DNA of 64,000 bases, from sequence record NC_028999.1, one strand, 5' to 3'. Both the position numbers and the translations under genes were made by a program. This document shows, one piece after another, positions 5,782 through 61,974 of this stretch. Below the pieces are notes generated by a model. That model was given only the letters and a program-made list of their open reading frames with translations. It had not been told where the DNA came from and did no database searches. Numbering within the stretch: the stretch's first letter is position 1; every line of letters begins with the position of its first letter.

Positions 5782-5832
5782 CGACATAGAGCCCCTCCGT
5801 AATGGAGGGGCCTTATGCCGTTATTTTTTTTT
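5782..5832. terminator. Bidirectional hairpin with CATA/TATG arms
   Basis: CGACATA-ga-GCCCCTCC-gtaat-GGAGGGGC-ct-TATGCCG then a T-run; lies between convergent genes. Confidence 0.8.
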
Positions 5833-6262
5833 ATGTTTCCGCAAACGTTAATGTAGCTGACGTTGTCGGTAGATATGCCATGGAGCGAGCTGATGGCTGT
5901 AGTGTTACAGTGTTCCCAGTGATCGGTACTTCAATATACTCATCAGGTTCCATTGGTATCCCAATGGTGTCACGCAATACACGAACAACGTCACGGTTCG
6001 TTGCGTATTGTCCACGCTTTCCCGGAATCTTAACCCCACGAAGGTCTTGCTCAATCGGACGACGATTAAAGTTGATAACTTGCGAACCAGTAAAATTCAA
6101 ACTGGTTGAAGTAGCTCGAATCGTTACCCGTGAATTACACTGCCCCTGTAACCAGATTTCAATATTATCCCACGTCACATCACTTAACGTGATGGGCGGG
6201 TTGATCCTGTTAGCTGCATTGAATTCATTGAGCAAAGCTTGACGAACATTCTTAACATGCAT
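5831..6262 (-). CDS. Virion/baseplate structural protein
   Basis: Start moved to ATG at 6262 (GAGGT RBS just after the upstream stop); shares L..IN..N and F.R..I motifs with 6271..7146 and 24583..25110. Confidence 0.6.
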   Translation of the reverse strand: MHVKNVRQALLNEFNAANRINPPITLSDVTWDNIEIWLQGQCNSRVTIRATSTSLNFTGSQVINFNRRPIEQDLRGVKIPGKRGQYATNRDVVRVLRDTIGIPMEPDEYIEVPITGNTVTLQPSARSMAYLPTTSATLTFAET

Positions 6263-6270
6263 AGCCCACC

Positions 6271-7146
6271 TCAGTCGTAATGTATCAACAATTGCCCCAC
6301 CACATCCAAACACTTGGTAGAACTAAGCTCTATAACGAGCACCATGCGTTTATCTTTGCGTGGGGTATACCGAGGTAGGGGGATGCCATGATAAACCACC
6401 TTGAAGCGTTGCTGGCCGTTTAAAACGTCATAGCACACATTGTGCGATACGGCTGATTCAGAAGTGGTCCATGGTTGTCCTGTGACTTTCTTCAAGATCG
6501 CTGCAAAGCGTTTGGTATCAGGGAAGAAATCCCCAACCTTAATGTTCTTCAAGTATTCACGATGAGGCGTGAAGTCATACCCGGTTACATAGTACGTACC
6601 AGAGATCTTAGTGCCATCGTTCCCTACTGGGAAACGGTTGGCGGTAGGAAACTCTAGTTGAGTAGAAAATGTACCTAGGTCTTTCTTCAGCGTATTCGAC
6701 AAACGAATTTTGAGAGAACCCACCCAACGTAGTGATTTAGGGTTTGCTTGAATAATGTATTCCTGCCCATATCGGTCCATCTCGAAATGCACAAGGTCAC
6801 TCACGTCGAAGACGATATCGTTCAGTTTTGCAATATCTGCCGCAAACTCTACAGTGGTGTAAGGTAGACGCTTTCCAGCGATGGTTTGTGTCCCAGACTG
6901 CCTAAAGAACGTAGCCAGATCTAAACGATCGTAGGTGTATTCAGTCAGTTCAACTTCCGGTAACATATTACCAGGACTGGTGCTACGATGGACACCAATC
7001 TTGATACGAGTCTTGGTACCGCCTAACGATTCGAACTCTTCCAACGTCGTGCTACCCGGAAACAACTGGGTTAAGCACGCCTCGTTGATCATGTCGATAA
7101 TGGCCGTCCAAGGAGAAGATTTAAGATAGTCCCTGGTGATGTACAT
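6271..7146 (-). CDS. Virion/baseplate structural protein (phiKZ gp127-like)
   Basis: 291 aa; YTYDRLDLATFF motif; synteny upstream of the portal. Confidence 0.6.
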   Translation of the reverse strand: MYITRDYLKSSPWTAIIDMINEACLTQLFPGSTTLEEFESLGGTKTRIKIGVHRSTSPGNMLPEVELTEYTYDRLDLATFFRQSGTQTIAGKRLPYTTVEFAADIAKLNDIVFDVSDLVHFEMDRYGQEYIIQANPKSLRWVGSLKIRLSNTLKKDLGTFSTQLEFPTANRFPVGNDGTKISGTYYVTGYDFTPHREYLKNIKVGDFFPDTKRFAAILKKVTGQPWTTSESAVSHNVCYDVLNGQQRFKVVYHGIPLPRYTPRKDKRMVLVIELSSTKCLDVVGQLLIHYD

Positions 7147-7149
7147 GTG

Positions 7150-9321
7150 TTACCCCGGTAATTTCGGCCAATTAGCATCGGTTGAGTTCTTATAATCGGG
7201 TAAATCACCCGTCTCGTTGGGATTATTCACCGGCTCAATCACTACGCTCCGTACTCCGATATCGCAACCACGGATATAATAGAGTGTGTCCTTAAAGCTG
7301 GTTTCTCGTACCTCAACGAATGGGTTAATTCGCCAACGATCTTCTTGGTCGTAACGATATCGAATATTAGGCGACAAAGCATCGTCGTAGATCCTCCACC
7401 GTTTACTCGATTCCGTGCGATAGGACCTCACATTGATGTTAGCTACAGGCGTAATCAGGTTACCATCCATTAGTGAGGTGATATCCCCTACTCGCGGCAC
7501 CACCATACCCAATACATGGAAATCGGTGAATGCTACGTTTCGCAGATACTGCAACGGGTAACTTGTCAATCTCCCCATCAATGCCAGCAACTCACGTTGA
7601 ATCTGACCTAGAGTAATCACTTCATGTAGGTTAGAACCCGTAGCAATATTGATCGTATCCTGACACAGTTGTTCCAGTTCCGATGTATCTAGATCCAGAA
7701 TGTCAAAAGCCGCTGCTCTGAAATAGGCTTCAAAAGTCATACCTATTTCGGGTACCAGGTCACACTTACGATTCATGTAGTGGTACTTAGTGAGTTGTTC
7801 ACAGTAAGCTCGACTACGTTGATGCTCTTGGAACGAATACATTTCCCATTGGCGCAGGTACTCTTGATGCAGTTTAGCGCAATCTAGATAGAACTGCTCG
7901 GTGGAGATATATTGCTTGAGTGGTGTATGCATGTCCTGAATCGCTTGAATCAGCTTGTCTGAGATCAGGCGTTTAGGTACTGCATTTCTCAACTCAGTAA
8001 AGGTTGGGAAACGATCACGTAGAACATCATAGGCGATCAAACGCGGAATGGTGGGCATGGGGATATCCCGTGCCTTGCAATACGTATAGACCGTTACAAT
8101 CAACGCTGCTCGAACAGACACTGTCATGTACTCACCCGTACGCGGGTTAGGTACCTGAATATAAGCCCGATAACGATCGCTAGTGGCTAGGTGTAACCAT
8201 TCGTTAAGTAATACGGACATTAAAGTCCTTACGTTGGAATTCGAACGGTCAATAACCTCAGAGTCAAAGACTTTGGTTTCCAGAATTGAATACTGGTCGC
8301 TACCCATCTGTTCGACAATTTCTTGCTCGGCATCAAATCGTACAATCGGGTTATCGCGTGCAAGATCATCTTCACGTTCCAGTAGATCAGCAACGGTGAC
8401 TTTCTCTTGACCAGGTTGGACAATCGGGAAGTTCACATCATGCTTCACCATATCTACAGCTGGACGAAGATCTTCTAACATGTCTTCGTTGTTCTGTTCG
8501 ATAGTGTACGAGATTAACGGAATACCCCGTGGCGTGAGAATATTGTCAACCAGACGTTGCCATGTATCTTGTTTGCCGGCGTTACGTTGTATGTAAGCAA
8601 TGTTCCGATATAACCACAATTTCTGACGAATATCCAAATAAGGCATGAACTCGTCAAGTCTACCATGGGAAGCCAGGTACTCGGTGATATGGTAGCTATG
8701 GGCTTTATTAGTCTTTGCGTTACGCAGTCGGATATTCATAATTGCCAGTGGTAATTGGCAATACATATTACCCAAAAACGTAGCCAGGTAAAGATCATCA
8801 GTTAAATTAAACTGACTATTGTACCAACGGTTGATGAAGGTAGTAACCCACTCCTGTAAAAGGAAAGCAAAATTGTCTTCTTGGTCTTCAACATAATCAG
8901 GATCATAGTACAAAATAGTACCATTATTTGAATTGATCGCCGTATTAATGTCGATGGGATAGAGGATTCCGTTGATCAATGGCGTCTGGTCAGGGTACTG
9001 AAGAGCCAGTGCGTTGTAAAGCTGTGAACCAGGATAATATTCCCGTGCAGTAGCACGGTGGAGCGCTAGATTTTCTTTTGTAAAATCTATCAACTCCAGG
9101 GTGTCAGCTGAACGTACTGTCATCATGACATCAGTGGAATGGTATTCCCCCGACATGTTCAGATAGTACTTCCAGGTTTCCGGATGCTCAGGATCGGATT
9201 CAACACCGATCTCTAAGAGTCGATCATTGATCTGCGTGGCGACATCGTCAAACTTAATGACGATAGATCTCGCCAATCTCATGACATCATCACGGTAAAC
9301 ACCAAAATACATGCTACTCAT
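7150..9321 (-). CDS. Virion structural/baseplate protein (phiKZ gp128-like)
   Basis: 723 aa ORF divergent from the portal, as in phiKZ-like phages (recall). Confidence 0.65.
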   Translation of the reverse strand: MSSMYFGVYRDDVMRLARSIVIKFDDVATQINDRLLEIGVESDPEHPETWKYYLNMSGEYHSTDVMMTVRSADTLELIDFTKENLALHRATAREYYPGSQLYNALALQYPDQTPLINGILYPIDINTAINSNNGTILYYDPDYVEDQEDNFAFLLQEWVTTFINRWYNSQFNLTDDLYLATFLGNMYCQLPLAIMNIRLRNAKTNKAHSYHITEYLASHGRLDEFMPYLDIRQKLWLYRNIAYIQRNAGKQDTWQRLVDNILTPRGIPLISYTIEQNNEDMLEDLRPAVDMVKHDVNFPIVQPGQEKVTVADLLEREDDLARDNPIVRFDAEQEIVEQMGSDQYSILETKVFDSEVIDRSNSNVRTLMSVLLNEWLHLATSDRYRAYIQVPNPRTGEYMTVSVRAALIVTVYTYCKARDIPMPTIPRLIAYDVLRDRFPTFTELRNAVPKRLISDKLIQAIQDMHTPLKQYISTEQFYLDCAKLHQEYLRQWEMYSFQEHQRSRAYCEQLTKYHYMNRKCDLVPEIGMTFEAYFRAAAFDILDLDTSELEQLCQDTINIATGSNLHEVITLGQIQRELLALMGRLTSYPLQYLRNVAFTDFHVLGMVVPRVGDITSLMDGNLITPVANINVRSYRTESSKRWRIYDDALSPNIRYRYDQEDRWRINPFVEVRETSFKDTLYYIRGCDIGVRSVVIEPVNNPNETGDLPDYKNSTDANWPKLPG

Positions 9322-9356
9322 GGTAATTTACTCACTTGTTAAATTAGGGGCTTCAA

Positions 9357-12059
9357 ATGGCTCAACGTCAAGTTAATGAGGTGGCGTATCCGAAGCTACA
9401 GGCGATCCGCTTGGGATCAACTGCAACGCCGACGAACGCACTCCTCAACCTTCTGCGTAAGGATCCAAACGCATTGGGTACGGAAGCCGCGAAACCTCGG
9501 GTTAACGTAAATCGTTTCACCCTGGACAAGGTTTCGCGCGACACCTCACAAGAGATCATCGATAGCGACTCTATTATGCAGTTGCTCCCTGACCTTGAGT
9601 TGGTGGAGACTGTATATGTAGGTTCGATTATCGACCCGAAGGCATTGTCAGATACTGATTTGACCTTCTCTGTCGATCAGGCTATTTTCGACAGTGAACT
9701 CTCCAAACACCTGCTTGAGCCTGTTGAGAAGTATTTTAAACGAGACTATAAGATTGACGAGCGCTTGGACCTGATCCTACGCGATTGTTTGTTCCGTAAA
9801 GGCGCTTCGATCCTAGCCGTTCTTCCCGAGAACGTACTAGATAATCTTATTAATGGTCGTCGTCAGGTTTCTATGGAGACCTTCGAACAGATCCGTAATC
9901 GCGTAGAGAATACTACTACTGATAACCTCGGGTTTTTGGGGCATCCCACTGATCAAACTATCTCGTTGGAGGGTTACGCTAATAACGCTACCACCAACCG
10001 GATACGCGGTGACAAACATCTTACCGTCACCGATAACTTCAACGTTTTGAAAGTCCCTGGGATGTCCCGCCGTGTACGCGAGATGTCAATCGCGAAGAAA
10101 CTTCGCGGTAACCAGGTTTCTTTGGAAGCTGAGGTACATAACTTCGGCAACGATGAAATCGAGAAGCTGTATCAGAGTCGCTTAGGGGGTACGGAACATA
10201 CACAAGTTGTAACGTCTCCTCGTTACATGGACCGTCCTTCGGTTGGCCATCCGCTGATCCTACCGTTACCAATGGAATCGGTCGTACCGGTGTTTGTTCA
10301 AGGTCGTCCTCATGAACATATTGGTTATTTCCTGTTGGTGGACCAACATGGTTATCCTATTTCGAAAGATTCGACCCGCGACTTCTATGGTGAACTGCAA
10401 GCTGGTTGGAAAGGTGGTAAGAACTCAGATAACAACTCCGAAGTTCTGCGACTGACCCGCGAAGCATTGGGTAACAATACTAAGCGACAAGATTTTGAAA
10501 TTGATGAGATCCAACAAACGTACAACGCTATTATCGTGAACGATCTGAACAACCGTCTGCGTAATGGCATGTACGACCAAGAACTGGAAATTGGGATCAC
10601 TGAAGAAATTCAGCGGATCATGCTCTATCGTTCTTGGAAAGCTAAGAATACTCAACTGGTATTCATTCCAGCAGAACTACTCACCTACATTGCTTTTGAC
10701 TATAATGTCAATGGTATCGGTGAGACGTTGCTGTCTCGGTCAAAAATGATCGCCACTATGCGTTCGACTCTGCTCATGGCCGAGACCATCGGCGGGATGC
10801 GTAACGCGGTAGGTCGTAAACGAGTGAATATCACACTCGATCCAGATGACGTTGATCCGGAACAAACGATCTCAAATATTCAATCCAACATCATGGAATC
10901 TGCACATCGTAGTTTCCCGTTGGCCGCTCCAGACCCTACTCAGGCAATGGACCACCTAATCCGTTCTGGCTTTGATTTTGCCATCAATACCAATGGTGCT
11001 GATTATGCAGAGACCAAAGTTGAATACGATGATTACAACACATCGGTAAACGCAGGTAATCCAGACCTGCAAGACCGTCTGCGTCGTATGCATATTTCGG
11101 GTATGGGTGTACCACCTGAGAAAGTGGATCCGATGTCTTCACCGGACTTCGCAACATCGGTGGTACAAAACGACCTCGTAATGTCCCGTCGTGTACGCGA
11201 TAAACAGAAGACATTCTGTCAACATCTGTCTAAGTTCATCCGTTCGTTCGTTACTCACAGTTCCATCATCCGTGAAGAATTGAACAAGATTGTAACAGAC
11301 AATGCTAAGATGTTGATTTCCCCAGAATTCAAACACATGACCGTACAGGAAGTGGTGGATGAATTCATCCTGTCGATCGAAGTTTCCCTACCGACTCCTG
11401 ACAACACGCAACATGAGCGTCAGTCTGAAGCATTGGAGAACTATGATCGCCTGCTGACTACTGCATTGGAATCGTATATCACTCCGGAACTATTCCCGGA
11501 TGAACTGACTCAGATTCCTGGATTGACAGACCAAGTCATGAATCATGTGAAAGCAATGTTCAAACGCCAGTTCATGGCACAGAACAATATTCTGCCGGAA
11601 CTGAATATCTTGACTGAGATGGACGGTGATAAACCGGCATTTAGTCTGTTGGACTTCGCAGCACTGCAACAAGGTACAATGGCGAAAGCCTTCTTGGCCT
11701 TTGCCAAGCATACACAGGAATCCAAACTCCATCTGGAGAAACTCTATAAGAACGTTATCGAAGGTAACGACGAGAACGGAATTACTCCTGGTGGCGGTGG
11801 TGATTTTGGGGGTGGCAATGACTTCGGTGGTGGAGACGAGTTCTCTAACATCGATGAAGGTGGTGGTGATATGGACCTGGGTGTCGATGGTGGCACTGGG
11901 GACGGCAGCGAGCAATCCGATGATTTCGGTGCTCCTGAATCGGATGTACTTGATGAGGGTACAGAAACCGATGAAGACAAACCACAAACCGATGGACTCG
12001 AAGACCCAATGGCTGAGGCGGAAGCTGAAGAAAACGGGAAAGACGAGGACAAGTTGTAA
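9357..12059 (+). CDS. Portal protein (phiKZ gp129-like)
   Basis: 900 aa; ESVVPV...EHIGYFLLVD..G motif; N-terminal S-x-E protease sites (VSME, ISLE, VSLE); acidic Gly-rich C-terminal tail; synteny. Confidence 0.8.
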   Translation: MAQRQVNEVAYPKLQAIRLGSTATPTNALLNLLRKDPNALGTEAAKPRVNVNRFTLDKVSRDTSQEIIDSDSIMQLLPDLELVETVYVGSIIDPKALSDTDLTFSVDQAIFDSELSKHLLEPVEKYFKRDYKIDERLDLILRDCLFRKGASILAVLPENVLDNLINGRRQVSMETFEQIRNRVENTTTDNLGFLGHPTDQTISLEGYANNATTNRIRGDKHLTVTDNFNVLKVPGMSRRVREMSIAKKLRGNQVSLEAEVHNFGNDEIEKLYQSRLGGTEHTQVVTSPRYMDRPSVGHPLILPLPMESVVPVFVQGRPHEHIGYFLLVDQHGYPISKDSTRDFYGELQAGWKGGKNSDNNSEVLRLTREALGNNTKRQDFEIDEIQQTYNAIIVNDLNNRLRNGMYDQELEIGITEEIQRIMLYRSWKAKNTQLVFIPAELLTYIAFDYNVNGIGETLLSRSKMIATMRSTLLMAETIGGMRNAVGRKRVNITLDPDDVDPEQTISNIQSNIMESAHRSFPLAAPDPTQAMDHLIRSGFDFAINTNGADYAETKVEYDDYNTSVNAGNPDLQDRLRRMHISGMGVPPEKVDPMSSPDFATSVVQNDLVMSRRVRDKQKTFCQHLSKFIRSFVTHSSIIREELNKIVTDNAKMLISPEFKHMTVQEVVDEFILSIEVSLPTPDNTQHERQSEALENYDRLLTTALESYITPELFPDELTQIPGLTDQVMNHVKAMFKRQFMAQNNILPELNILTEMDGDKPAFSLLDFAALQQGTMAKAFLAFAKHTQESKLHLEKLYKNVIEGNDENGITPGGGGDFGGGNDFGGGDEFSNIDEGGGDMDLGVDGGTGDGSEQSDDFGAPESDVLDEGTETDEDKPQTDGLEDPMAEAEAEENGKDEDKL

Positions 12060-12097
12060 CGACATAAAAGCCCCACCTTCGGGTGGGGCTTTATGCT
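12060..12097. terminator. Bidirectional hairpin with CATA/TATG arms
   Basis: CGACATA-aaa-GCCCCACC-TTCG-GGTGGGGC-tt-TATGC between convergent genes. Confidence 0.85.
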
Positions 12098-12100
12098 CTC

Positions 12101-24493: not shown

Positions 24494-24530
24494 TATAAAA
24501 CCTCCCTCGGTTCTCGGGGGAGGTTTTATA
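24494..24530. terminator. Terminator hairpin
   Basis: TATAAAACCTCCC...GGGAGGTTTTATA inverted repeat; TATG at ~24536 downstream. Confidence 0.7.
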
Positions 24531-24582
24531 ATGCTATGTAGGCTGAGTAACTTTTTTCTTAAGCCCCATTAGAGGTTTTAGC

Positions 24583-26639: not shown

Positions 26640-26668
26640 GGAGTCCCTTAGGGGACTCCTTTATGTCG
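26640..26668 (+). terminator. Hairpin followed by TTTATGTCG
   Basis: GGAGTCCC-TTAG-GGGACTCC-tt-TATGTCG. Confidence 0.7.
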
Positions 26669-26757
26669 ACTTTAAAATGCCTTACTGTATGAGTCTTATT
26701 TCTCTTAAGACGTGTAAGAAGTAGTTGAAAGACTCTCTTCACCCAAAGGAAGACACA

Positions 26758-32780: not shown

Positions 32781-32812
32781 AAAATGGCCTCCGTTTGGAG
32801 GCCATTTTATTT
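32781..32812 (+). terminator. Rho-independent terminator
   Basis: AAAATGGCCTCC-GTTT-GGAGGCCATTTT-ATTT. Confidence 0.8.
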
Positions 32813-34384: not shown

Positions 34385-34415
34385 ATAGAGCGTGGGCCTA
34401 GTGCCCACGCTCTAT
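34385..34415. terminator. Terminator hairpin
   Basis: ATAGAGCGTGGGC-ctagt-GCCCACGCTCTAT. Confidence 0.75.
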
Positions 34416-35623: not shown

Positions 35624-35663
35624 CGGCATATCGCCCCACCCGAAAAGGTGGGGCTTTATGTTG
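35624..35663. terminator. Bidirectional hairpin with CATA/TATG arms
   Basis: CGGCATA-tc-GCCCCACC-cgaaaa-GGTGGGGC-tt-TATGTTG between convergent genes. Confidence 0.85.
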
Positions 35664-36377
35664 TTATGCACGGAACATACTGAAGTACATAGCGTCGATA
35701 AATTCGAAGTCCATGTGAATCAGCTTCTCCATGCGAAATCGCCAGAGCGTATACTTCTTAGCTTCGACATTAATGTTTGATACGTCGTGCTCAAAGATCT
35801 TAGGTCCAATGAAATTGAAACAGTTCATTTTGACCTTACCCAGCTCTTCTGCATGATACTTTACCCACGGAATAAAATCGTAAGTAATGTACATAGCAAA
35901 TAAGGCGTCCATAAAGAACGGGGACAGTTCTTCCATGGAGTGTTTAACGATCTCGACGGTGGTAGATTGCCCATAGAGCTCTTTGATGATCTCTACGAGT
36001 TGTTCTTTATATTCACCATCTAAGTCATAGGGATGGATATTCACACATACACACACTTCATCCAACGGATTCCCCATGTTGTCCATGCGGTTAACGTTGT
36101 CTTCAGCTAGTACGCGCATGAGGAAAGGCATGATACCCGTCATTACTGAAGCATTAAGGGTATCTGCTGTATTTTGTCCGCCCCGCTCGGCATAGGCTTC
36201 TGCAAACTGTTCGTTAGTAATACGCCCTTTGGTTAACACATCCCAGAAATCATTCTCTCGTGTCCAGTAGTCTCTGGTCTTAACCAAATCCACAGCGGCC
36301 TCTGGACAGATGCGTTGAATGGTTCCTAGACGTGTATCCAAAAGCGCATCCAAATCAATCAAGATACGCTTAAGCAT
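35664..36377 (-). CDS. HAD-like fold protein
   Basis: N-terminal ILIDLDALLD resembles HAD motif I (DxD). Confidence 0.45.
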   Translation of the reverse strand: MLKRILIDLDALLDTRLGTIQRICPEAAVDLVKTRDYWTRENDFWDVLTKGRITNEQFAEAYAERGGQNTADTLNASVMTGIMPFLMRVLAEDNVNRMDNMGNPLDEVCVCVNIHPYDLDGEYKEQLVEIIKELYGQSTTVEIVKHSMEELSPFFMDALFAMYITYDFIPWVKYHAEELGKVKMNCFNFIGPKIFEHDVSNINVEAKKYTLWRFRMEKLIHMDFEFIDAMYFSMFRA

Positions 36378-41125: not shown

Positions 41126-41164
41126 CAACATATTGCCCTCTCCCGAAGGAGAGGGCTTATGCCG
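41126..41164. terminator. Bidirectional hairpin with CATA/TATG arms
   Basis: CAACATA-tt-GCCCTCTCC-CGAA-GGAGAGGGC-t-TATGCCG between convergent genes. Confidence 0.85.
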
Positions 41165-41575
41165 TCACACCTGTTCCCGACGTTCTCTCATGCAGAACTG
41201 CATCAGCTGTTTGAGGTCTTCTATAAACACACATTCGTCCGTGTACAGAAGCCAGCACGGGGTCTTCCGCGCAATGCGTTTATAGAACTTCTCGGAGGTG
41301 AGATCGTTTTTGTCGATCGGAAGAATGCCCTTCCACAGATAAGGCCCAAACAGGGTCGGAAGTCGAAGCGCACTCTCGTCACGAACCAAGCGCATCGTCG
41401 AATTAAGTCTTGCAATCCGAGAACACTCATGGTCACGACATTGCACTAAAGCAGCATGCAATGACGCCATCACACACAGCCGCTTGAGATCATCATCCAC
41501 ACGATTCCAAAAGAATAGCCATAATCCTTCGGCAACTTTGCGGACGGGTCTCATGATTCTGTTTGTAATGCTCAT
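41165..41575 (-). CDS. Hypothetical protein
   Basis: 136 aa, co-transcribed downstream of RNase H. Confidence 0.6.
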   Translation of the reverse strand: MSITNRIMRPVRKVAEGLWLFFWNRVDDDLKRLCVMASLHAALVQCRDHECSRIARLNSTMRLVRDESALRLPTLFGPYLWKGILPIDKNDLTSEKFYKRIARKTPCWLLYTDECVFIEDLKQLMQFCMRERREQV

Positions 41576-45324: not shown

Positions 45325-45357
45325 ATAAAGGAGAGGGTTTCGACCCTCTCCTTTTAT
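45325..45357. terminator. Terminator hairpin
   Basis: AAAGGAGAGGGT-TTCG-ACCCTCTCCTTT-TAT. Confidence 0.85.
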
Positions 45358-47205: not shown

Positions 47206-47240
47206 TAATGGCGGGGAATCAATAAGATTCCCCGCCATTA
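47206..47240. terminator. Terminator-like hairpin
   Basis: TAATGGCGGGGAATC-aataa-GATTCCCCGCCATTA perfect 15-bp stem. Confidence 0.75.
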
Positions 47241-49721: not shown

Positions 49722-50900
49722 ATGACCACCATAGCCGCATGGGACGAAGTTTGCAGTGACTGGGATAAGATCACCAAGATCCAATCCTCGCTCGAACGCT
49801 TTGCGGATGTGCTGGCTGGACGTGACGAAGCTACTGAGGAGATGGCGCAAGTCATCTCCATTGGTCTGGAGTCGATCGACCCTAACTTCGATATCAAAGA
49901 AGGTAGTAAGATCACCCTCCGAGCTATTAAAGAAGGGATCGTGATGGCAGCTAAGGCTGCCCGCGATCTTATTCGTTATCTCTGGGAACTCCTGAACTCA
50001 TTCTACGTCAAATTCACTGGTAGTATCCGTCGAGTTCGTCGTACACAAGAAGGCATTAGTCGTCGACTGGGTAAGCTCGGTTCTAAGACCACTTACCAGA
50101 AGATGTCTGTGTCGGGTATCCAGCGTTTGTCCATTGACGGTAACTTTGTTGGTACCGAACTGAGCAACCTGCAAGATATCCACCAACTAACCAACTACAT
50201 TCTTAATCAGTATCCCAAGAGCGTCGTTAAGATTGCTCGTGACGCTAGTCGCCAGTTCCTGAACATTCTGGATCAAGGTGGTGAGCGTCAGGTCGTGATG
50301 GAAAATGCAGTTGATGCATTTGCTGATATTCTCCAGCGGGACTTCATACCCCCGCAAGGTTTCCGTCCTGTGCAACCACGGGAACTGGGTAGCCTTGAGA
50401 AAGGTGTTAATCGCAGTGAGATCCTGCCAGGTAACGTAGCCTTCCTCTATACTCCGCCAGATGTAATTCGCCAACAGCTGAAGTCTGGTAAGGGTAACCT
50501 GGAGAATATCATCAAGAGTTCGTTCACTATGCAATTCTCTGAATTGCAGCTCAATGTGGCTGACCGTTCTGAACGTGAGATCGAGGTGCCCTCAGTCCGT
50601 ACTTTGAGTGAAATCACCGAAAAGATTTCCAGCATCCTGTCTCTGGCCGAGCGGGCTGAAGCGGGTCGAAAGGACTTCGCCACGGTCAAGGTTGTAGTGG
50701 ACGACGCTATTCGCCAAATTGCTGAGCGTAGTAGTGAAGAGAACAATTCCGGTAATGTGCTATTACATATCACGGGTGAGATCTCTAAGAAACTAGCTGA
50801 GCCCATGGGTTTCTATACCCACTGGTTGGCAGTAACGCTGAACGTGTGGCTGAACTTTGTAAGTCAGTGCATTAAGCATTACGAAGACGAAGGCGTATAA
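49722..50900 (+). CDS. Inner head protein (phiKZ gp163-like paralogue)
   Basis: SLER and GLES sites; similar to the mature region of 47970..49712. Confidence 0.7.
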   Translation: MTTIAAWDEVCSDWDKITKIQSSLERFADVLAGRDEATEEMAQVISIGLESIDPNFDIKEGSKITLRAIKEGIVMAAKAARDLIRYLWELLNSFYVKFTGSIRRVRRTQEGISRRLGKLGSKTTYQKMSVSGIQRLSIDGNFVGTELSNLQDIHQLTNYILNQYPKSVVKIARDASRQFLNILDQGGERQVVMENAVDAFADILQRDFIPPQGFRPVQPRELGSLEKGVNRSEILPGNVAFLYTPPDVIRQQLKSGKGNLENIIKSSFTMQFSELQLNVADRSEREIEVPSVRTLSEITEKISSILSLAERAEAGRKDFATVKVVVDDAIRQIAERSSEENNSGNVLLHITGEISKKLAEPMGFYTHWLAVTLNVWLNFVSQCIKHYEDEGV

Positions 50901-50938
50901 CGGCATAATAGCCCCTCCTTCGGGAGGGGCGTTATGTT
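50901..50938. terminator. Bidirectional hairpin with CATA/TATG arms
   Basis: CGGCATA-ata-GCCCCTCC-TTCG-GGAGGGGC-gt-TATGTT between convergent genes. Confidence 0.85.
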
Positions 50939-50939
50939 A

Positions 50940-51206
50940 TCATTGACTTACTGTCATCTTCGAGTTATCAGTGAGTGTATGGCCACAACTTGCGGCATCT
51001 CCGACTTTACAGATGGGGATTCCTTGTACGCGCAGTTTAGTAGAACCCTGTACCATACGTGCATTGTTGTGTGACCCGTTACCATGTCCTCGAATCTGAT
51101 CACCAAGCTGGGTTGCTACAATACCGCCAATGCGTAATTTAAGTGCACCTGGTCCCAACACCGTACCACCTGCTACAGCGATACCGATTCTTCCGACAGC
51201 TGGCAT
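50940..51206 (-). CDS. PAAR-like spike tip protein
   Basis: ATG 51206; MPAVGRIG, GD.I.GHG..SH, GSTKLRVQGIPI..VGD.ASCGH (His/Cys metal ligands). Confidence 0.85.
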   Translation of the reverse strand: MPAVGRIGIAVAGGTVLGPGALKLRIGGIVATQLGDQIRGHGNGSHNNARMVQGSTKLRVQGIPICKVGDAASCGHTLTDNSKMTVSQ

Positions 51207-54561: not shown

Positions 54562-54581
54562 ATTTAAACCCGTTACACGCC

Positions 54582-54589
54582 TATATTAC
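54582..54589 (+). promoter_or_regulatory. Early promoter (phiKZ-type TATATTAC)
   Basis: Exact motif, with ATTTAAA upstream, just before a run of small genes. Confidence 0.6.
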
Positions 54590-54826: not shown

Positions 54827-55112
54827 ATTCGATAGTCTCGCAGGTTTGGTATGTTTCCTCGTATTGCTTTTCTTCGTAGGGAAGATTATCTTGTCGGATA
54901 TTTTCTCAACTCTAGAGAAGCAACAACATGATGAACTGCATAAACAACATGCGGAGCAGTTACGTCTTGATGCCGAACGCTATCAAGAACGATTAAACGA
55001 AATTGGTCGGGGTCGAATAGACATTGGGTATGTTTTCGATTACGAAGATTGGTTACTAGATAAACAAGACCATCAGCGTAATGGAACCCATTATGAAGTC
55101 ATCAACATTTAG
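54819..55112 (+). CDS. Small membrane protein
   Basis: ATG overlaps the upstream gene end; TM LAGLVCFLVLLFFVGKIIL then coiled coil. Confidence 0.55.
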   Translation: MDKFDSLAGLVCFLVLLFFVGKIILSDIFSTLEKQQHDELHKQHAEQLRLDAERYQERLNEIGRGRIDIGYVFDYEDWLLDKQDHQRNGTHYEVINI

Positions 55113-55136
55113 CCTCCTTCGGGAGGCTCTATGTCG
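55111..55136 (+). terminator. Hairpin followed by TATGTCG
   Basis: AGCCTCC-TTCG-GGAGGCT-c-TATGTCG. Confidence 0.7.
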
Positions 55137-55157
55137 TAAAACCTAAAAGGTGTTATC

Positions 55158-55532: not shown

Positions 55533-55546
55533 AAGGAAGAAAGAAT

Positions 55547-55801: not shown

Positions 55802-55838
55802 TCACCAAACTAATTCAATTTAGAAAAAGGAAATTATC

Positions 55839-56234: not shown

Positions 56235-56247
56235 CAGCACCAACTGA

Positions 56248-56300
56248 CGGCATAACGCCCCTCCTTCGGGAGGGGCTTATGTCTACTAAATTTTTTTTCA
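56248..56300 (+). terminator. Hairpin with CATA/TATG arms
   Basis: CGGCATA-ac-GCCCCTCC-TTCG-GGAGGGGC-t-TATGTC, T-run further on. Confidence 0.85.
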
Positions 56301-56304
56301 CATC

Positions 56305-56312
56305 TATATTAC
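56305..56312 (+). promoter_or_regulatory. Early promoter (TATATTAC)
   Basis: Exact motif after an AT-rich tract, upstream of small genes. Confidence 0.6.
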
Positions 56313-56357
56313 CTATCTGAGCAATATCCCGCTGGCTCAAGCATGAGGTAAATAAAA

Positions 56358-56498
56358 ATGGGTTGGAAAAGTTATGTTGCCCTGTCATTGGGCGTGGTAC
56401 TGGGCGCCGTGATCTTCGTTGCAATCAGTGAAGATGGTTTACCCGAGCGAATCGAAAACATCGAAGAGGCTGATGCCAGTCCGATCAATATTGAGTGA
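56358..56498 (+). CDS. 46-aa membrane microprotein (absent from the ORF track)
   Basis: GAGGT RBS; MGWKSYVALSLGVVLGAVIFVAISEDGLPERIENIEEADASPINIE. Confidence 0.65.
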   Translation: MGWKSYVALSLGVVLGAVIFVAISEDGLPERIENIEEADASPINIE

Positions 56499-56504
56499 TC
56501 GGTT

Positions 56505-56933: not shown

Positions 56934-57039
56934 TGTACTCGGGTGTTTATGATTTGTAGCTAGGACTAAAGAATTCGGAGGGAGGCTTTTTATATTCTTT
57001 TATCCTACAGTTCTTTTCTATAAACACCAAGGTATAAAC

Positions 57040-57498
57040 ATGAGCAGCATCATTCGATACAACATCAAGACTGCGAATAAACCGATTCTTGATGTTCTAC
57101 ATCTGTATCTGGGTATTCGTGAAAGAGTCGATGAAGTCAACAAGACTGTAATCGACGGAACTACTGTAGAACTGAACCTAGTCCTGGTAGTAAACCATCG
57201 CTATATCCGAGACTATGATGAGATTGCCGATACATTGGCAAATCTATCAAAAGGAACTCCGTATGAACTCTACATACTGAGTAATCGATTCCTGTTCAGT
57301 TGGATGACTGATAACTTCAATGACCTGGGTGGTTTACAAGAACGTTATCAGACTGTTTTGGAAAGTGATGTCTATGGTACCGTATACGACACCACCAGAG
57401 CACGATACACGAAAACACCGGAATGGCGATCCCCACATTTAGGATGGGCTGAGACCTTTAATCGGGGTTTCAATAGTTTGGTGAGTGTATTTGGATAA
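57040..57498 (+). CDS. Hypothetical protein
   Basis: AAGG RBS, 152 aa, ends at a hairpin. Confidence 0.6.
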   Translation: MSSIIRYNIKTANKPILDVLHLYLGIRERVDEVNKTVIDGTTVELNLVLVVNHRYIRDYDEIADTLANLSKGTPYELYILSNRFLFSWMTDNFNDLGGLQERYQTVLESDVYGTVYDTTRARYTKTPEWRSPHLGWAETFNRGFNSLVSVFG

Positions 57499-57500
57499 GT

Positions 57501-57539
57501 CGGCATAAGCCCCACCCGAAAAGGTGGGGCAATATGTCG
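57501..57539. terminator. Bidirectional hairpin with CATA/TATG arms
   Basis: CGGCATA-a-GCCCCACC-cgaaaa-GGTGGGGC-aa-TATGTCG between convergent genes. Confidence 0.85.
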
Positions 57540-58058
57540 TTAGAAACCAAGAAGTGCTTCTTCTTCTTTGCGTGCCTTTTCACGAATAGCTTCCATGCGT
57601 TCAGTGAATTCTTCCGAAGTCTCAGCGATCACACCGATTTCGTCTTCACCTTCAGCATGGGTAAATTCGCCCAGATCTTCTTGATCGATTTGTGGTTCCA
57701 TACCACGACCATCACCTTCAGTGGCGACGAATGGGTTCTTGTTCTTTGCATTTTGAATAAATGCAGCCATACCAGCCAATAGGTCTGCCGAAGTACGGTT
57801 GGCTTCCTGATCGACACTGATACGCTTGTTAGCGATCGCTGTACGATCCATGGAGTCCATGACCTTAAGCATGGTATCAACAGATTCTTTATCTGTAGGG
57901 ATGGTTCCTACTGGATTGGAGAACGCCAGCTGATGCAGAATGCGTTGTTTGGTATTCTGAGTATACTGGATCTGTTCTTCATAGGTCATGTCCGAGTATT
58001 GCCGTTCAGGCTCTACTGGTACAAATACGTGGGGCTTCTCAGCGGGATACTGTTCCAT
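57540..58058 (-). CDS. Hypothetical protein
   Basis: ATG 58058 with GAGG RBS; helical and acidic. Confidence 0.65.
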   Translation of the reverse strand: MEQYPAEKPHVFVPVEPERQYSDMTYEEQIQYTQNTKQRILHQLAFSNPVGTIPTDKESVDTMLKVMDSMDRTAIANKRISVDQEANRTSADLLAGMAAFIQNAKNKNPFVATEGDGRGMEPQIDQEDLGEFTHAEGEDEIGVIAETSEEFTERMEAIREKARKEEEALLGF

Positions 58059-58132
58059 GGGACACCTCTCGTTGGTAAAAATACCCAACGGAATAACTAT
58101 ATGCCATAAAATGCGGATTGGAGTTCTATACA

Positions 58133-58675
58133 ATGATTACAAGGCTACGCCAATGGTGGCGCGGACTATCGGCAACACCCAAACAAAAGTATACCCGCTG
58201 GCTGGAAGAGATCAATGAAATCCCTACGTTATCAGAGGAACTCCCCGACGCATTAGTTGAGCTCTGGCGGCGAATCGACGTTGATGCAATCAGTCGTCAA
58301 AACCCCCGAGTGATGATGTCAGCCTTCTTCGAGCTGCGTCATGCCAATATCCAGGAATTGATCCAAACCCTACATCAGGTCAATGACCACGTTGCATCGG
58401 GATCAGCTTCTAAGATTGAATACCTATCGAAGAACGATTTCATTAAGCATCGCGAAATGTCCTTGGATAATTATTTCGTGGATGCTGAAAATTACGCTGT
58501 CGATATTAAAGAACATCTATCCCAACTTAAAGACTTGCTGATTACCCATGGTCAGATTCTGGAAATTAAGGAGGAGAGTTTTTATCGTCGCATGTTAGGT
58601 CGCTTATACTTCGATGTACTAGCACTGACAGAAACACTCGTTAAACATATGCAAGAGGGCACCGATATGAAGTAA
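58133..58675 (+). CDS. Hypothetical protein
   Basis: ATG 58133 after GGAG. Confidence 0.6.
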   Translation: MITRLRQWWRGLSATPKQKYTRWLEEINEIPTLSEELPDALVELWRRIDVDAISRQNPRVMMSAFFELRHANIQELIQTLHQVNDHVASGSASKIEYLSKNDFIKHREMSLDNYFVDAENYAVDIKEHLSQLKDLLITHGQILEIKEESFYRRMLGRLYFDVLALTETLVKHMQEGTDMK

Positions 58676-58727
58676 CTGGGAATACGATCACGAAACCTTT
58701 AGTTCAATTCACCGTAGGTGTAAAGCA

Positions 58728-59483
58728 ATGGATTCTATCAAGGACCTTTTGGCTGATCCTCTTAAGGGTACCAAACAGGCTCAGGGCGTTCTGTGTTATT
58801 TGTTTCGTGAAGTGTTGTTATGGCGTAAGATTAATTGGTTTACCTGGAATCGTCGTCAGAAAGCATACTTCGAGAAACCTCACAACGCAGTCAATCCCGA
58901 TAAAGGGAATCTGAATAAAGCGTTGAAGGCTGATGACATGAACTGGCCAGGCTTCAAGAAAGGGATCGACTTCCTTAACCCGGAATCCGCTACCCTGGAA
59001 GTGAAGCTGAACTGGACCCATAAGGAAAGTACGAGCTATGTGATTGTCATCGACCCCACGGAAGATGAGAAAAATCCCACAGTCAATAATTTCCCATGGC
59101 AGGACTGCCCGATCTTCAAAAGTGCTAAACCCGCTGAAACATTGATGTCTCATCTTTTTCGTCACATTGTGGCGGAGGAAGGGAAAGGTGAACCCGACAT
59201 CATGGTCTGGTGGGAGAAGAAGTTCGATGACTACATTAAGAACCCAGTTAATGTAGTTGGCCTGAACCAAAAGGAAATCAACCAAAACATCGCAGCATTG
59301 CGACGTTCGTTGATGGAAGCTCGCATGTCATGGAACGTGTTCCGCCGTGGATTGCATTTGTTGCGGCCTCGCTCGGAGGAATACATTCTGACGCTCCACT
59401 GGACGACAGACCCGGAAATGAAGAAAACATTACCGGACTCGATTCACCCAATCAAGATCGCCGACCCGTACTTTGTGGAATAA
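58728..59483 (+). CDS. Hypothetical protein with internal domain duplication
   Basis: Two copies of L..LFR...W...Y...P.N...L.+.L....M.W..F++G+..L.P. Confidence 0.65.
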   Translation: MDSIKDLLADPLKGTKQAQGVLCYLFREVLLWRKINWFTWNRRQKAYFEKPHNAVNPDKGNLNKALKADDMNWPGFKKGIDFLNPESATLEVKLNWTHKESTSYVIVIDPTEDEKNPTVNNFPWQDCPIFKSAKPAETLMSHLFRHIVAEEGKGEPDIMVWWEKKFDDYIKNPVNVVGLNQKEINQNIAALRRSLMEARMSWNVFRRGLHLLRPRSEEYILTLHWTTDPEMKKTLPDSIHPIKIADPYFVE

Positions 59484-59487
59484 CTCG

Positions 59488-59865
59488 ATGGATAACACAA
59501 TCGACCTCAGCTCCCCTCAATGCCCAGAAGTATTGCAGTTTCATGGAAGCCACCTGAAATGGACTGCGACAGGTAAGGCATTTTACAGCTGGAATGGATT
59601 GCGACTTTACCTGATCACCGGTAAACAACATCCTAAATACCTCGATGGTATCGGACTGGAAGAAGCTGGTGTTGAGAATAAATACGAGTTTGTCGAATCG
59701 CTGTACCAACAGCTGGAAGATGCACTACGTATTAACATCGCGAAGTTTCCTCTGCTGCGCTTGAAGTTGAACAAGCGTACGCGAATCATCTGGACGGCTT
59801 ACGGTATTACTCCGGCTGAAGAGGAATGGGTGAAAATTGTTCAACGCGTAGTGGCGAGCATGTAG
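59488..59865 (+). CDS. Hypothetical protein
   Basis: ATG just after the upstream stop; ends before a hairpin. Confidence 0.55.
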   Translation: MDNTIDLSSPQCPEVLQFHGSHLKWTATGKAFYSWNGLRLYLITGKQHPKYLDGIGLEEAGVENKYEFVESLYQQLEDALRINIAKFPLLRLKLNKRTRIIWTAYGITPAEEEWVKIVQRVVASM

Positions 59866-59871
59866 TTGAAG

Positions 59872-59907
59872 GACATGGGGCGTCTCCGAAAGGGGACGCC
59901 TTATGCC
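59872..59907 (+). terminator. Hairpin with CATG/TATG arms
   Basis: GACATG-g-GGCGTCTCC-GAAA-GGGGACGCC-t-TATGCC. Confidence 0.7.
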
Positions 59908-59952
59908 TCCAATTGTATGACCTATTATTTTTTTGTCTGAACAGGTGTAACC

Positions 59953-61125
59953 ATGCCTACTCTCGCATCAGCTTCCTTTACAGGTATACCAACAGATCCC
60001 GTCAAAACGGTGGATGCCTATAAAGACGTAGTGGACACAACCCTACAGAACACGCTTCAACCTAAAATCTCTGCCTTTGAAATTGGCATGGATGACCTGC
60101 TCGCCAAAACTACCAAAGTTGTAAAAGGTATTGGTAGTAGTTTGTTGGGTAGTGGAGGTATTGACCTCAACCAAGCTAAAGATCGAATCGTTGATGCCTT
60201 AAAAGGCTCCCGTTCGAGCATTGTGTATTTGGGAGAAGCCCTAGAACGTTCGATTAACGAAGAACTCACTGGAACCGATACAGGTACAGGTTACGTCCGC
60301 AAGGCTACGGATATGCTCGATGGCGTAAAAGCCATCATGCAGAACAAAGAGTACTACTTCGAAAATGGAAACTTCCAAGGTGTCAACGGCATCATGGGAT
60401 TCTTGGGAGATCTGACCAATAACTCCATTCTTCGTGCAGTTGACTTGGGTGCCAATGCTGCCATTCTGAAAGGAGTGTTATCCCAGGTATCAGCCTGGGG
60501 GATTCCTGATCTGGTTGATACCACATTCGGGGCATCGTGGAATGACCAGTACAAGCGCTATGATTACCAGTATGACGATAATTTCCGATTCACTGTAGCC
60601 AAGCGTACATCTAAAGATCTCTCGCCGGGCACTGATCTGCTCACCATTGATCGCATCATGGTACATGGTGGAGATATGGCCCTGGTTGCTGAGAACCCAG
60701 ACTTCCCTATCCAACTGCTGAGTTCATACGTGTTCCCAGCTGGTACTGTACCCGGTGGTCCATTCCCAGTAATGATCCCAGATCCAGCTAATCCAAGCGG
60801 CCCTATGATCCCTGACCCGGAAGGTACACAGACCGTACCCAATTACGCGAATGAACTCGCATTGTTGTTGGAGATCATGGATCGCTTGAAACCAGACTGG
60901 TTCTATTACTTGCGTCGAGTATTTATTGATCGGAATGGCGATGGCGATTATTACCGTGATGATAAGGTTTGGAATCTTCGGGTTATTGCTCAAGCTTCTC
61001 AAGATGCAACAACATTACTGTTAACCAGTGATGAGCACCGTGATGCTGTTCTGACTGCTCCGTTTTATAAGGTGGAGAGTGCCACAGCTGAACTCAAAGC
61101 GATGTATCCCTACTTTGCTGAATGA
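59953..61125 (+). CDS. Virion head protein (phiKZ gp174-like)
   Basis: 390 aa; CAGG RBS; synteny next to the prohead protease. Confidence 0.6.
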   Translation: MPTLASASFTGIPTDPVKTVDAYKDVVDTTLQNTLQPKISAFEIGMDDLLAKTTKVVKGIGSSLLGSGGIDLNQAKDRIVDALKGSRSSIVYLGEALERSINEELTGTDTGTGYVRKATDMLDGVKAIMQNKEYYFENGNFQGVNGIMGFLGDLTNNSILRAVDLGANAAILKGVLSQVSAWGIPDLVDTTFGASWNDQYKRYDYQYDDNFRFTVAKRTSKDLSPGTDLLTIDRIMVHGGDMALVAENPDFPIQLLSSYVFPAGTVPGGPFPVMIPDPANPSGPMIPDPEGTQTVPNYANELALLLEIMDRLKPDWFYYLRRVFIDRNGDGDYYRDDKVWNLRVIAQASQDATTLLLTSDEHRDAVLTAPFYKVESATAELKAMYPYFAE

Positions 61126-61158
61126 CAACATAAACGCCTCCCTTCGGGGAGGCTTTAT
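61126..61158 (+). terminator. Hairpin with CATA/TATA arms
   Basis: CAACATA-aac-GCCTCCC-TTCG-GGGAGGC-tt-TATAT. Confidence 0.75.
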
Positions 61159-61178
61159 ATTTGAATGCATCTAAACCC

Positions 61179-61186
61179 TATATCAC
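61179..61186 (+). promoter_or_regulatory. Possible early promoter (TATATCAC, 1 mismatch)
   Basis: Just upstream of the small gene at 61220. Confidence 0.4.
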
Positions 61187-61219
61187 TAACATGAATCCAA
61201 TAACCAAGAGGAAAATACA

Positions 61220-61480
61220 ATGACTGAACGTTTGAAATCGGTATGGGTTGCTTGCTCCCTGTTGCGGACACGGTGGCCCACTATCCAAGATCTTCCGGTC
61301 GGTGAAGACTATCATGTCATCGTTAAAAATGACTCACTGATGGTCTTCAAAGGTCAGACTCCTGTCGGTTCTATGCATAGAACTGATAGCGAGCCACGTA
61401 TCTTCGAGGGGCATACTCTTGAAGAATTTACCAAGGTCGTTCTGGACTTGGAATACGATACCCATGAGGGTCATCGTTAA
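61220..61480 (+). CDS. Small hypothetical protein
   Basis: GAGGA RBS, 86 aa. Confidence 0.6.
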   Translation: MTERLKSVWVACSLLRTRWPTIQDLPVGEDYHVIVKNDSLMVFKGQTPVGSMHRTDSEPRIFEGHTLEEFTKVVLDLEYDTHEGHR

Positions 61481-61482
61481 TG

Positions 61483-61522
61483 CGATATAAAACCCTCCCC
61501 GCCAAGGGAGGGTTTTATGCCG
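61483..61522 (+). terminator. Hairpin with TATG arm
   Basis: CGAT-ATAAAACCCTCCC-cgccaa-GGGAGGGTTTTAT-GCCG. Confidence 0.75.
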
Positions 61523-61609
61523 TTCAGAGTGTTAACGCAAACTGAATGGAGTGGTAACCGCGGTCCCGCTCTCGCAAAAGTACCGTAGACAAAACTAAAA
61601 GGGCCACCC

Positions 61610-61921
61610 ATGAAATGGTCTTTTATCAACGAGCCATTCCGGCGCCTTTTACGGGTGCGGGACGTGGTTTGTAACCGAGATTATTATCTTACTACTGAAG
61701 GTTGGACGCCGGATGAAGTGGATAATACTCTCGCATATAATACGGTAGCAGAGTATAATAAAGCTCTGGCCCGTGCTAAAATGGATGTATTAAACGGTTT
61801 GTTCAGCAACAACGTGTTGTTGGACGGTCTTGATGTAACCCAGGAAGTCATCGACGGTAACGTTAAGCTTGTCAGGTGGCCTCCAAGTTGTGAACTACAT
61901 CACGTGCAGCTAGCTGCCTAA
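61610..61921 (+). CDS. Small hypothetical protein
   Basis: 103 aa; AAGGG RBS. Confidence 0.55.
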   Translation: MKWSFINEPFRRLLRVRDVVCNRDYYLTTEGWTPDEVDNTLAYNTVAEYNKALARAKMDVLNGLFSNNVLLDGLDVTQEVIDGNVKLVRWPPSCELHHVQLAA

Positions 61922-61922
61922 G

Positions 61923-61974
61923 AACATAAAGCCCTCTCCTTCGGGAGAGGGCGATTATGCTTTCTTTTTTTTTT
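61923..61974. terminator. Bidirectional hairpin with CATA/TATG arms
   Basis: AACATA-aa-GCCCTCTCC-TTCG-GGAGAGGGC-gat-TATGC then a T-run; convergent genes. Confidence 0.85.

Follow-up and report, generated by a model that had tools for sequence, protein, structure and literature searches.

Recent maps of RNA ends have defined a terminator motif in two related phages. In phiKZ, the 61 terminators mapped by ONT-cappable-seq (ONT, Oxford Nanopore Technologies) yielded the motif BCCYCCCCHWWDGGGRRGGBYTTATKYYGT, in which a TTAT region comes after a hairpin; six overlapping bidirectional terminators were located between convergent genes (Putzeys et al. 2024, microLife; PMC10914365). In 201phi2-1, 132 transcription termination sites (TTS), 15 of them bidirectional, are reported, together with a motif A (n = 59) said to resemble the phiKZ motif and a motif B that co-occurs with it and elongates the hairpin (PMC11512511). 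Reporter tests in uninfected P. chlororaphis showed two- and multi-motif terminators to be the stronger; in this host eight 201phi2-1 copies terminate the host RNA polymerase (RNAP) in vivo, and the authors proposed that long stems serve resistance to antitermination (PMC11512511). Here a dispersed family of hairpins flanked by CATA and TATG boxes is described in a window of 64,000 nucleotides which is identical (100%) to bases 124001-188000 of Pseudomonas phage PhiPA3 (NC_028999.1) and spans genes 138-207. Very probably the hairpins are intrinsic terminators of transcription of the kind found in phiKZ-like phages (Chimalliviridae), the activity of 201phi2-1 copies in an uninfected host being indirect evidence that no accessory factor is needed, and the PhiPA3 copies are a new case of the recently described phiKZ/201phi2-1 motif, often bidirectional. 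A preliminary description of this DNA had listed 13 such hairpins, and the sequences it described are present at all 13 (Table 1). Its consensus for the downstream half, GGGGC-N1-3-TATG(C/T)(C/T)G, turns out to be the published phiKZ motif, which in gapless form finds four window sites at no more than three mismatches where none is expected.

The family was delimited by a hairpin census that was blind to the boxes, requiring a perfect Watson-Crick core, a loop of 3-9 nt and a free energy of -10 kcal/mol or lower. TATG was then counted at -4 to +6 from the 3' end of the stem, CATA at the mirrored positions, and 30 dinucleotide shuffles served as the control. The window holds 29 hairpins against a shuffle mean of 7.8; TATG accompanies 11 of them (0.1 in shuffles), CATA 10 (0.4) and both boxes eight, a combination absent from every one of the 30 shuffles. 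The preliminary claim of both arms at eight sites is thus upheld, as is the enrichment of TATG that it had proposed as a check. Over the whole PhiPA3 genome (309 kb) there are 164 strong hairpins, 101 intergenic and 63 genic, with gene context taken from our own codon-score gene caller, which was compared with the annotation in the window. TATG follows 52 of the 101 intergenic hairpins and three of the 63 genic ones (chance 3.3%), and CATA precedes 53 and four, respectively (chance 2.2%). This anchored census was used because a MAFFT alignment of the eight copies misplaced the spacer and loop indels; a generic terminator scanner overlooks most copies since it demands a T-run. Rfam covariance models gave no match at gathering thresholds anywhere in the window, and a tRNA scan of the window found none.

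CATA and TATG are mutual reverse complements and are predicted to form an outer helix, a pairing that the preliminary description had overlooked. All 15 window RNAs that were folded, from both strands, contain this CAUA/UAUG helix, separated from the GC stem by a bulge or internal loop of 1-3 nt, with energies of -20 to -30 kcal/mol and z-scores of -4.1 to -7.1. The boxes are kept while the spacer varies from 1 to 3 nt, as had been noted. Anchored on the GC core, the sense tails of PhiPA3 (n = 123) read T 69%, T 69%, T 76%, A 53%, T 60% and G 40% or T 34%, and TAT lies within 7 nt of the stem in 99 of the 123. After TATG the tails continue with a pyrimidine (Y) in 97%, a second in 96%, G in 59% and T in 79%. 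About half of the PhiPA3 intergenic hairpins lack the G and have tails of the TTTATTT or TTATATTT type. The upstream arm usually begins 3 nt past a stop codon (TAA/TGA-CGR-CATAA) or is fused with it (TAACATAA). This phasing of stop codon, three nucleotides (CGR, CAA) and CATAA is seen genome-wide, window examples being 12054-12066, 50895-50908 and 56242-56255. Terminator stems therefore start only some 8-12 nt past the stop codon, and so short a distance would be acceptable as long as translation were uncoupled from transcription in the phage nucleus.

Support for termination comes from RNA 3' ends mapped in the relatives. The phiKZ ends are those listed as T001-T118 in the bioRxiv supplement of the phiKZ paper, an incomplete list, and 75 of these 118 lie 0-16 nt past a census hairpin in the correct direction. 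Where the phiKZ tail carries TATG (n = 29), the TTS falls at -3 from the G in two cases, -1 in nine, +1 in eight, +2 in nine and +3 in one. TATGC tails end at the C in seven of ten; with TATGT the end is one base further in eight of 15 and at -1 in five of 15. Of eight validated 201phi2-1 terminators, six have the TTS at the second base past TATG, one has it at the first, and one, a TATAC variant, at the corresponding base. RNA thus ends in or just past UAUG, about 6-8 nt beyond the GC stem, as is canonical for intrinsic termination. At convergent phiKZ sites, two-armed elements have TTS on both strands in five of 12 cases and elements with CATA alone have a minus-strand TTS in four of eight, so that the CATA arm is a working tail for the other strand.

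Individual window copies have counterparts at the same gene junctions in phiKZ and in PS119XW, whose genes are about 76% identical to those of PhiPA3. The boxes are retained at these positions, while stems and loops have been replaced with complementarity still perfect. The element at 12060 has orthologues in PS119XW and at phiKZ 133072, the latter with TTS T059/T060 on both strands; that at 41126 corresponds to phiKZ 158212 (T070/T071, both strands), that at 50901 to 167840 (T076) and that at 57501 to 173802 (T081). The family does not fit a dispersed mobile repeat, similar to repetitive extragenic palindromes or miniature inverted-repeat transposable elements (REP/MITE-like), for which sequence shared by descent beyond functional constraint and a variable presence at orthologous sites would be expected: no common stem, loop or spacer unites the copies or their orthologues, and the positions are conserved across three genera.

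A second regularity concerns the two bases just outside the boxes, one preceding CATA and one following TATG, which almost never form a Watson-Crick pair. In PhiPA3 these flanks are A..C in 22 elements, G..T in 12, Watson-Crick in one and otherwise in four; the corresponding counts are 5, 12, 3 and 6 in phiKZ and 3, 6, 1 and 1 in the 68 kb of PS119XW. For the elements of these three phages with purine/pyrimidine flanks, 60 of 65 are A..C or G..T (p = 2e-13), and the rule holds in all eight two-armed window copies. A sample from IMG/VR, 122 distinct elements with CCCCTCC stems, many on contigs of 230-325 kb, gave A..C or G..T in 106 and Watson-Crick flanks in six (106/112). The rule is previously unreported and highly significant. 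Each rule-obeying two-armed element therefore comprises one TATGC and one TATGT half-site. Orthologues switch between the two states: the window elements at 5782 and 41126 are A..C and their phiKZ counterparts G..T, and hence both flanks have changed with the non-Watson-Crick state kept. No covariation was found beyond the boxes, at offsets 2-5. Full two-armed elements in IMG/VR (CATAAAGCCCCTCC...GGAGGGGC..TATGYYGT) also occur on viral contigs of 20-48 kb, which may be pieces of jumbo phages or belong to unrelated phages, as well as on those above 230 kb, so that the element may not be confined to Chimalliviridae.

Several causes of the rule are candidates: a required pair of wobble geometry, a stop to the outer helix at the C-G pair that leaves the last 1-2 nt free, or a deliberately unequal strength in the two directions. 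Folding favours the strand that forms G.U over its complement by 1-5 kcal/mol in six of the seven convergent elements of the window, the two strands being about equal at 12060. The A..C or G..T state bears no relation to loop orientation (14 vs 9) and has a weak link to the sense strand (19 vs 7). On the plus strand of convergent phiKZ sites G..T outnumbers A..C by 9 to 1, while the two states are about equally common in PhiPA3 (6 vs 7). What comes next in the phiKZ copies is usually a T-run on the TATGT side and, on the TATGC side, GTTAA, a sequence that contains the stop codon of the neighbouring gene. With the rule in hand, termination by two non-canonical phage RNAPs could be tested with a handful of point mutants.

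The sequence and the RNA-end maps of the relatives show how the elements are built. The nascent sense RNA folds into a C-rich/G-rich stem of very high stability, with UUCG as the usual cap, and the transcript ends some 6-8 nt further on, inside the tail UU-UAUG-Y-Y-G-U, at the G or within 2 nt of it. An element between convergent genes is a near-palindrome that presents a hairpin and TTATGYYGT on each strand, the CATA box therefore being the TATG of the other strand. On a single RNA, the CAUA(A) arm is envisaged to pair with (U)UAUG, to lengthen the stem and to strip the tail off the template, so strengthening termination and leaving almost no single-stranded 3' end. The long U-tract would be replaced by a proximal UUU and a pause-like signal, and the likeness of the tail to the four-base late-promoter core would be unused for initiation.

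Some observations weigh against this account. At co-directional PhiPA3 sites CATA is as common as TATG (31/65 and 29/65), so that a confinement of CATA to convergent sites is ruled out; such a frequency is not expected if CATA is merely the tail of the opposite strand. Antisense TTS are rare at the co-directional phiKZ sites that bear an arm (2/25), and armless co-directional phiKZ hairpins have a sense TTS in 21 of 37 cases. Hairpins without TATG hence terminate too and the box is not required. Termination in PhiPA3 is carried over by analogy from the RNA-end maps of its relatives, ONT-cappable-seq positions are good to about 2 nt, which makes the register of any pause uncertain, and trimming of longer RNAs as far as the hairpin could, in principle, also produce such 3' ends.

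This last point leads to the view that the ends reflect RNA processing or stability, the RNA being trimmed or cleaved back to a protective hairpin with UAUG and its flank as determinants for a nuclease or RNA-binding protein. The outer helix does sequester the tail, leaving an overhang of 0-2 nt, the exchange of G.U for A.C flanks is typical of a recognised wobble pair, and 3'-end methods alone cannot separate termination from trimming. Set against this, the cloned 201phi2-1 elements cut downstream reporter expression in uninfected P. chlororaphis, which amounts to termination, and the distance from stem to end is the canonical one. Enhanced crosslinking and immunoprecipitation (eCLIP) of ChmC, the only survey of RNA binding in PhiPA3, gave no motif, binding being near start codons. 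Processing is accordingly an improbable source of the ends. A function at the level of DNA, as a cruciform or a palindromic protein site for handling DNA in the phage nucleus, had also been suggested in the preliminary description and would suit both the near-palindromic build and boxes conserved in sequence beyond complementarity. It is not what a symmetric DNA function would predict, however, that the loop is strand-specific: at co-directional sites the sense-strand loop is UUCG in 42 PhiPA3 copies and CGAA in one, the phiKZ figures being 27 and 0. The C(UUCG)G tetraloop is relevant in RNA only, and the combined 69 to 1 therefore points to selection on the sense RNA and not on a DNA cruciform. 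Copies that directly follow stop codons and are almost absent within genes, box flanks that are systematically non-complementary, mapped RNA 3' ends coinciding with the elements in relatives, and an eCLIP survey that yielded no motif all sit poorly with such a role, which is hardly credible.

A further idea is that the elements are terminator-promoter hybrids, whose tail TATG would also fire late transcripts of the non-virion RNAP (nvRNAP) outward, antisense at convergent sites. As the preliminary description stated, TATG with G as +1 is the core of the phiKZ late promoter; it is necessary for nvRNAP initiation, albeit insufficient alone (Yakunina 2015, PMC4666361), and the gp123 subunit binds non-template TATG in the phiKZ nvRNAP structure (PMC12809450). 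Promoters, moreover, often lie close downstream of the terminators. Yet the phiKZ data contradict initiation at the tail itself. With 123 of the 149 mapped transcription start sites (TSS) used, P005-7 and P127-149 (26) lying outside the test, none falls within 5 nt of the G of the 92 same-strand terminator-tail TATGs. The hybrid is therefore not supported, and existing phiKZ data settle that, within these 123 TSS, the terminator TATG is not a detectable promoter. Nine phiKZ TSS do lie within 60 nt downstream of terminator TATGs, at 6-49 nt, each with a separate signal: an early promoter 37-49 nt off, another TATG at 21-43 nt, or, for the nearest (P049), a second TATG 5 nt further on (TTATGCTATGT). 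The base after TATG differs as well, being T 23, A 19, C 5 and G 5 at start sites (T/A in 42/52) and C 38, T 28 and A 2 at terminators (C/T in 97%). Only four antisense RNAs with defined TSS are reported in phiKZ, and two-armed copies are commonest at convergent sites, where a promoter would be harmful. A hybrid role is thus very improbable.

A different use of the same word is attractive to consider: an elongating nvRNAP might read the TATG of the tail through the non-template pocket of its gp123 homologue and halt about 8 nt past the hairpin, with the non-Watson-Crick flank then setting where the hairpin stops and the RNA ends. This proposal is tentative and on balance unlikely, but if it is true, one four-base word is a start signal in one context and a pause or stop in another. 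The terminators are not clearly reserved for one polymerase. The preliminary suggestion of phage-RNAP-specific terminators stands as to termination, given the 3' ends of phiKZ and 201phi2-1, and lacks support as to specificity: host RNAP is stopped by 201phi2-1 copies and the ends of early units are mixed. PhiPA3 units that begin at early-type CTATATTAC promoters end at seven TATG-type and about ten other hairpins, and a division into TATG-type terminators for nvRNAP and T-rich terminators for the virion RNAP (vRNAP) is unsupported, as early-type units end at both.

Promoters near the terminators appear as signals of their own. Past the hairpin at 24497 the conserved TTATAATGCTATGT sets terminator and late promoter side by side as two separate words; the layout is common to PS119XW and phiKZ, where the hairpin is TTS T064 and the second TATG is late TSS P075. 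A separate TGTATGAG (26683-26691), about 25 nt past the 26640 terminator, is orthologous to phiKZ late TSS P078. On sequence grounds, this site and the window GCTATGT with TATG at 24535-24538 are probable late promoters. GCTATG(T) is common to several of the mapped late starts of phiKZ, and the late-promoter word may therefore be longer than TATG. The PhiPA3 genome also has 18 plus-strand copies of the early-type core CTATATTAC, typically 27-52 nt past a hairpin. The longer motif, ..TTTAAA..N..CTATATTAC(A), resembles phiKZ early (vRNAP) promoters (..GATCTATATTAC..), and by implication genes 191-192 and 196-197 form early units inside the late structural region. The terminator at 55111 closes the unit begun at the early-type promoter at 54582. 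The core at 56298 stands apart from the element at 56248, and the start signal is therefore distinct from the terminator TATG.

Table 1. Hairpin elements and neighbouring promoter cores in the PhiPA3 window (positions are those of the window; a dot marks elements given without a strand)
Feature	Position	Strand	Parts	Flanks	Neighbours and context
Two-armed terminator	5782..5821	.	CATA 5785-5788; GC stem 5791-5811; loop GTAAT; TATG 5814-5817	A..C	gene 144 (+) / gp126-like - strand open reading frame
Two-armed terminator	12060..12099	.	CATA 12063-12066; stem 12067-12092; loop TTCG; TATG 12092-12095	A..C	convergent genes 148 (+) / 149 (-)
Two-armed terminator	35624..35664	.	CATA 35627-35630; stem 35633-35654; loop CGAAAA; TATG 35657-35660	G..T	genes 169 (+) / 170 (-)
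Two-armed terminator	41126..41165	.	CATA 41129-41132; stem 41135-41156; loop CGAA; TATG 41158-41161	A..C	genes 176 (+) / 177 (-)
Two-armed terminator	50901..50940	.	CATA 50904-50907; stem 50911-50930; loop TTCG; TATG 50933-50936	G..T	genes 187 (+) / 188 (-)
Two-armed terminator	56248..56285	+	CATA 56251-56254; stem 56257-56276; loop TTCG; TATG 56278-56281	G..T	co-directional genes 195 / 196; early-type promoter core 24 nt downstream
Two-armed terminator	57501..57540	.	CATA 57504-57507; stem 57509-57530; loop CGAAAA; TATG 57533-57536	G..T	genes 197 (+) / 198 (-)
Two-armed terminator	61923..61962	.	CATA 61925-61928; stem 61931-61952; loop TTCG; TATG 61956-61959, then T-tract	A..C	genes 204 (+) / 205 (-)
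One-armed terminator	26640..26669	+	stem 26640-26659; tail TTTATGTCG; TATG 26662-26665		after gene 164
One-armed terminator	55111..55137	+	stem 55111-55128; loop TTCG; tail CTATGTCG		after gene 192
Variant copy	59872..59910	+	upstream GACATGG; stem 59879-59900; tail CTTATGCC; TATG 59902-59905		after gene 201
Variant copy	61126..61165	+	CATA 61129-61132; stem 61136-61153; loop TTCG; tail TTTATATTTG		after gene 202
One-armed copy	61483..61525	+	13-bp stem 61487-61518; TATG 61516-61519; tail GCCGT		after gene 203
Hairpin of the same GC type, no boxes	4050..4080	+	GCCCCACC-TTCG-GGTGGGGC; T-rich tail TTCTTTTCG		
Hairpin	24497..24538	+	tail TTTTATAA, then separate GCTATGT (TATG 24535-24538)		
Intergenic hairpin, T-rich terminator class	32781..32808	+	12-bp stem; tail ATTTCGTCTTATTT; no TATG		
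Intergenic hairpin	45327..45354	+	12-bp stem; loop TTCG; tail TATTAGC; no TATG		
Early-type promoter core	54575..54589 (54582-54589)	+	(C)CTATATTAC		outside the hairpin family
Early-type promoter core	56298..56312 (56305-56312)	+	TCTATATTAC		24 nt past the 56248 terminator

Three of the copies in Table 1 deviate in detail. The stem at 59872 has one U.G pair on the plus strand; the tail at 61126 keeps TTAT and lacks the G, its minus-strand reading being a TATG-type tail; and the stem at 61483 takes in ATAAAA/TTTTAT. Enustun et al. mentioned a peak of eCLIP coverage in the interval, without annotation, that separates gp203 from gp204 (PMC11077065). If the gp numbering equals the gene names, this interval is 61483-61610, with the 61483 hairpin, and a small RNA that starts or ends there is possible. 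Strong intergenic hairpins without TATG, absent from the preliminary list, lie at 4050, 24497, 32781, 34385, 45327 and 47206. That at 45327 has a phiKZ orthologue at 162423, which is TTS T074, and that at 4050 would terminate the gp124-like plus-strand open reading frame (ORF) described below. The hairpins at 34385-34415 and 47206-47240, between co-directional late genes, have unusually long, perfect stems of 13 and 15 bp (-24 and -27 kcal/mol); their tails, TTAAGTGG and AAGGAACT, are neither TATG-type nor T-rich and place them outside both terminator classes.

The context of the elements led to the correction of two gene calls in the window. Deposited gene 145 (plus strand, 5802-6242) is spurious: its start ATG lies within the loop of the hairpin, and its codon score is -22. 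The minus-strand ORF 5831-6313 scores +7 and is homologous to the phiKZ virion structural protein gp126 (35% identity, E 1e-29). The preliminary count of seven elements between convergent genes is right, although for the one at 5782 it holds only once gene 145 has been replaced. Deposited gene 141 (minus strand, 2587-4041) is probably an artefact, judging from coding statistics and homology. The plus-strand ORF 2476-4026 which overlaps it has a codon score of +149 vs -54, and aligns to residues 251-721 of phiKZ gp124 (42% identity, E 6e-109), and residues 2-208 are matched by gene 140 (1935-2720; E 1e-36). The PhiPA3 gp124 orthologue is therefore split in two overlapping frames (window 1935-4056), the cause being a frameshift or an error of sequencing somewhere from about 2476 to 2720; in PS119XW and phiKZ gp124 is one gene. 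As PhiPA3 is a widely used nucleus-forming phage model, the census offers about 100 candidate terminators and operon boundaries for it.

Comparison with the described systems places the PhiPA3 elements closest to phiKZ. Both have a GC-rich C-arm/G-arm hairpin with a mostly UUCG-type loop and then YTTATKYYGT, located after stop codons, with bidirectional overlaps between convergent genes and at orthologous positions (PMC10914365). PhiPA3 differs in stems that are GC-richer and more varied (GCCCCACC, GCCCCTCC, GCCCTCTCC), and the published phiKZ motif omits the upstream CATA arm and the flanking-base rule (PMC10914365). Motif B of 201phi2-1, which elongates the hairpin, fits the PhiPA3 CATA arm (PMC11512511), and the eight 201phi2-1 sequences suggest that the two may be the same.

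A number of parallels can also be drawn with canonical bacterial terminators. Bidirectional intrinsic terminators of the A-tract/hairpin/U-tract form likewise use one hairpin for both strands between convergent genes; they share an upstream flank that is complementary to the tail and extends the stem; and their 3' end lies about 7-9 nt past the stem. In PhiPA3, by contrast, the tail is a specific UUAUGYYGU and not a U-tract, the boxes are conserved in sequence beyond A/T richness, and the pair just outside them is kept non-Watson-Crick. With the phiKZ nvRNAP late promoter (PMC4666361; PMC12809450) the tail shares the four bases TATG; in the promoter their G serves as +1, T or A comes next and GC often precedes (GCTATGT), whereas a terminator has TATG within the final 6 nt of its RNA, with the GC stem and TT before it and Y-Y-G-T after. 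The tail finally recalls the elemental pause consensus of multisubunit RNAPs, defined for E. coli as G-11 G-10 T-3 G-2 Y-1 G+1 (PMC6062546, PMC6336406). When the tail has its most frequent layout, GGGC-TT-TATG-Y-Y-G, an RNA ending on the first Y agrees with G-11, G-10, T-3, G-2 and Y-1, and an RNA ending on the second Y with G-11, G-10, Y-1 and G+1; thus GG(N6)TGY with its 3' end at Y agrees with five of the six positions of the extended consensus, a resemblance that may point to pausing, although a consensus of the E. coli enzyme may not hold for the phage RNAPs.

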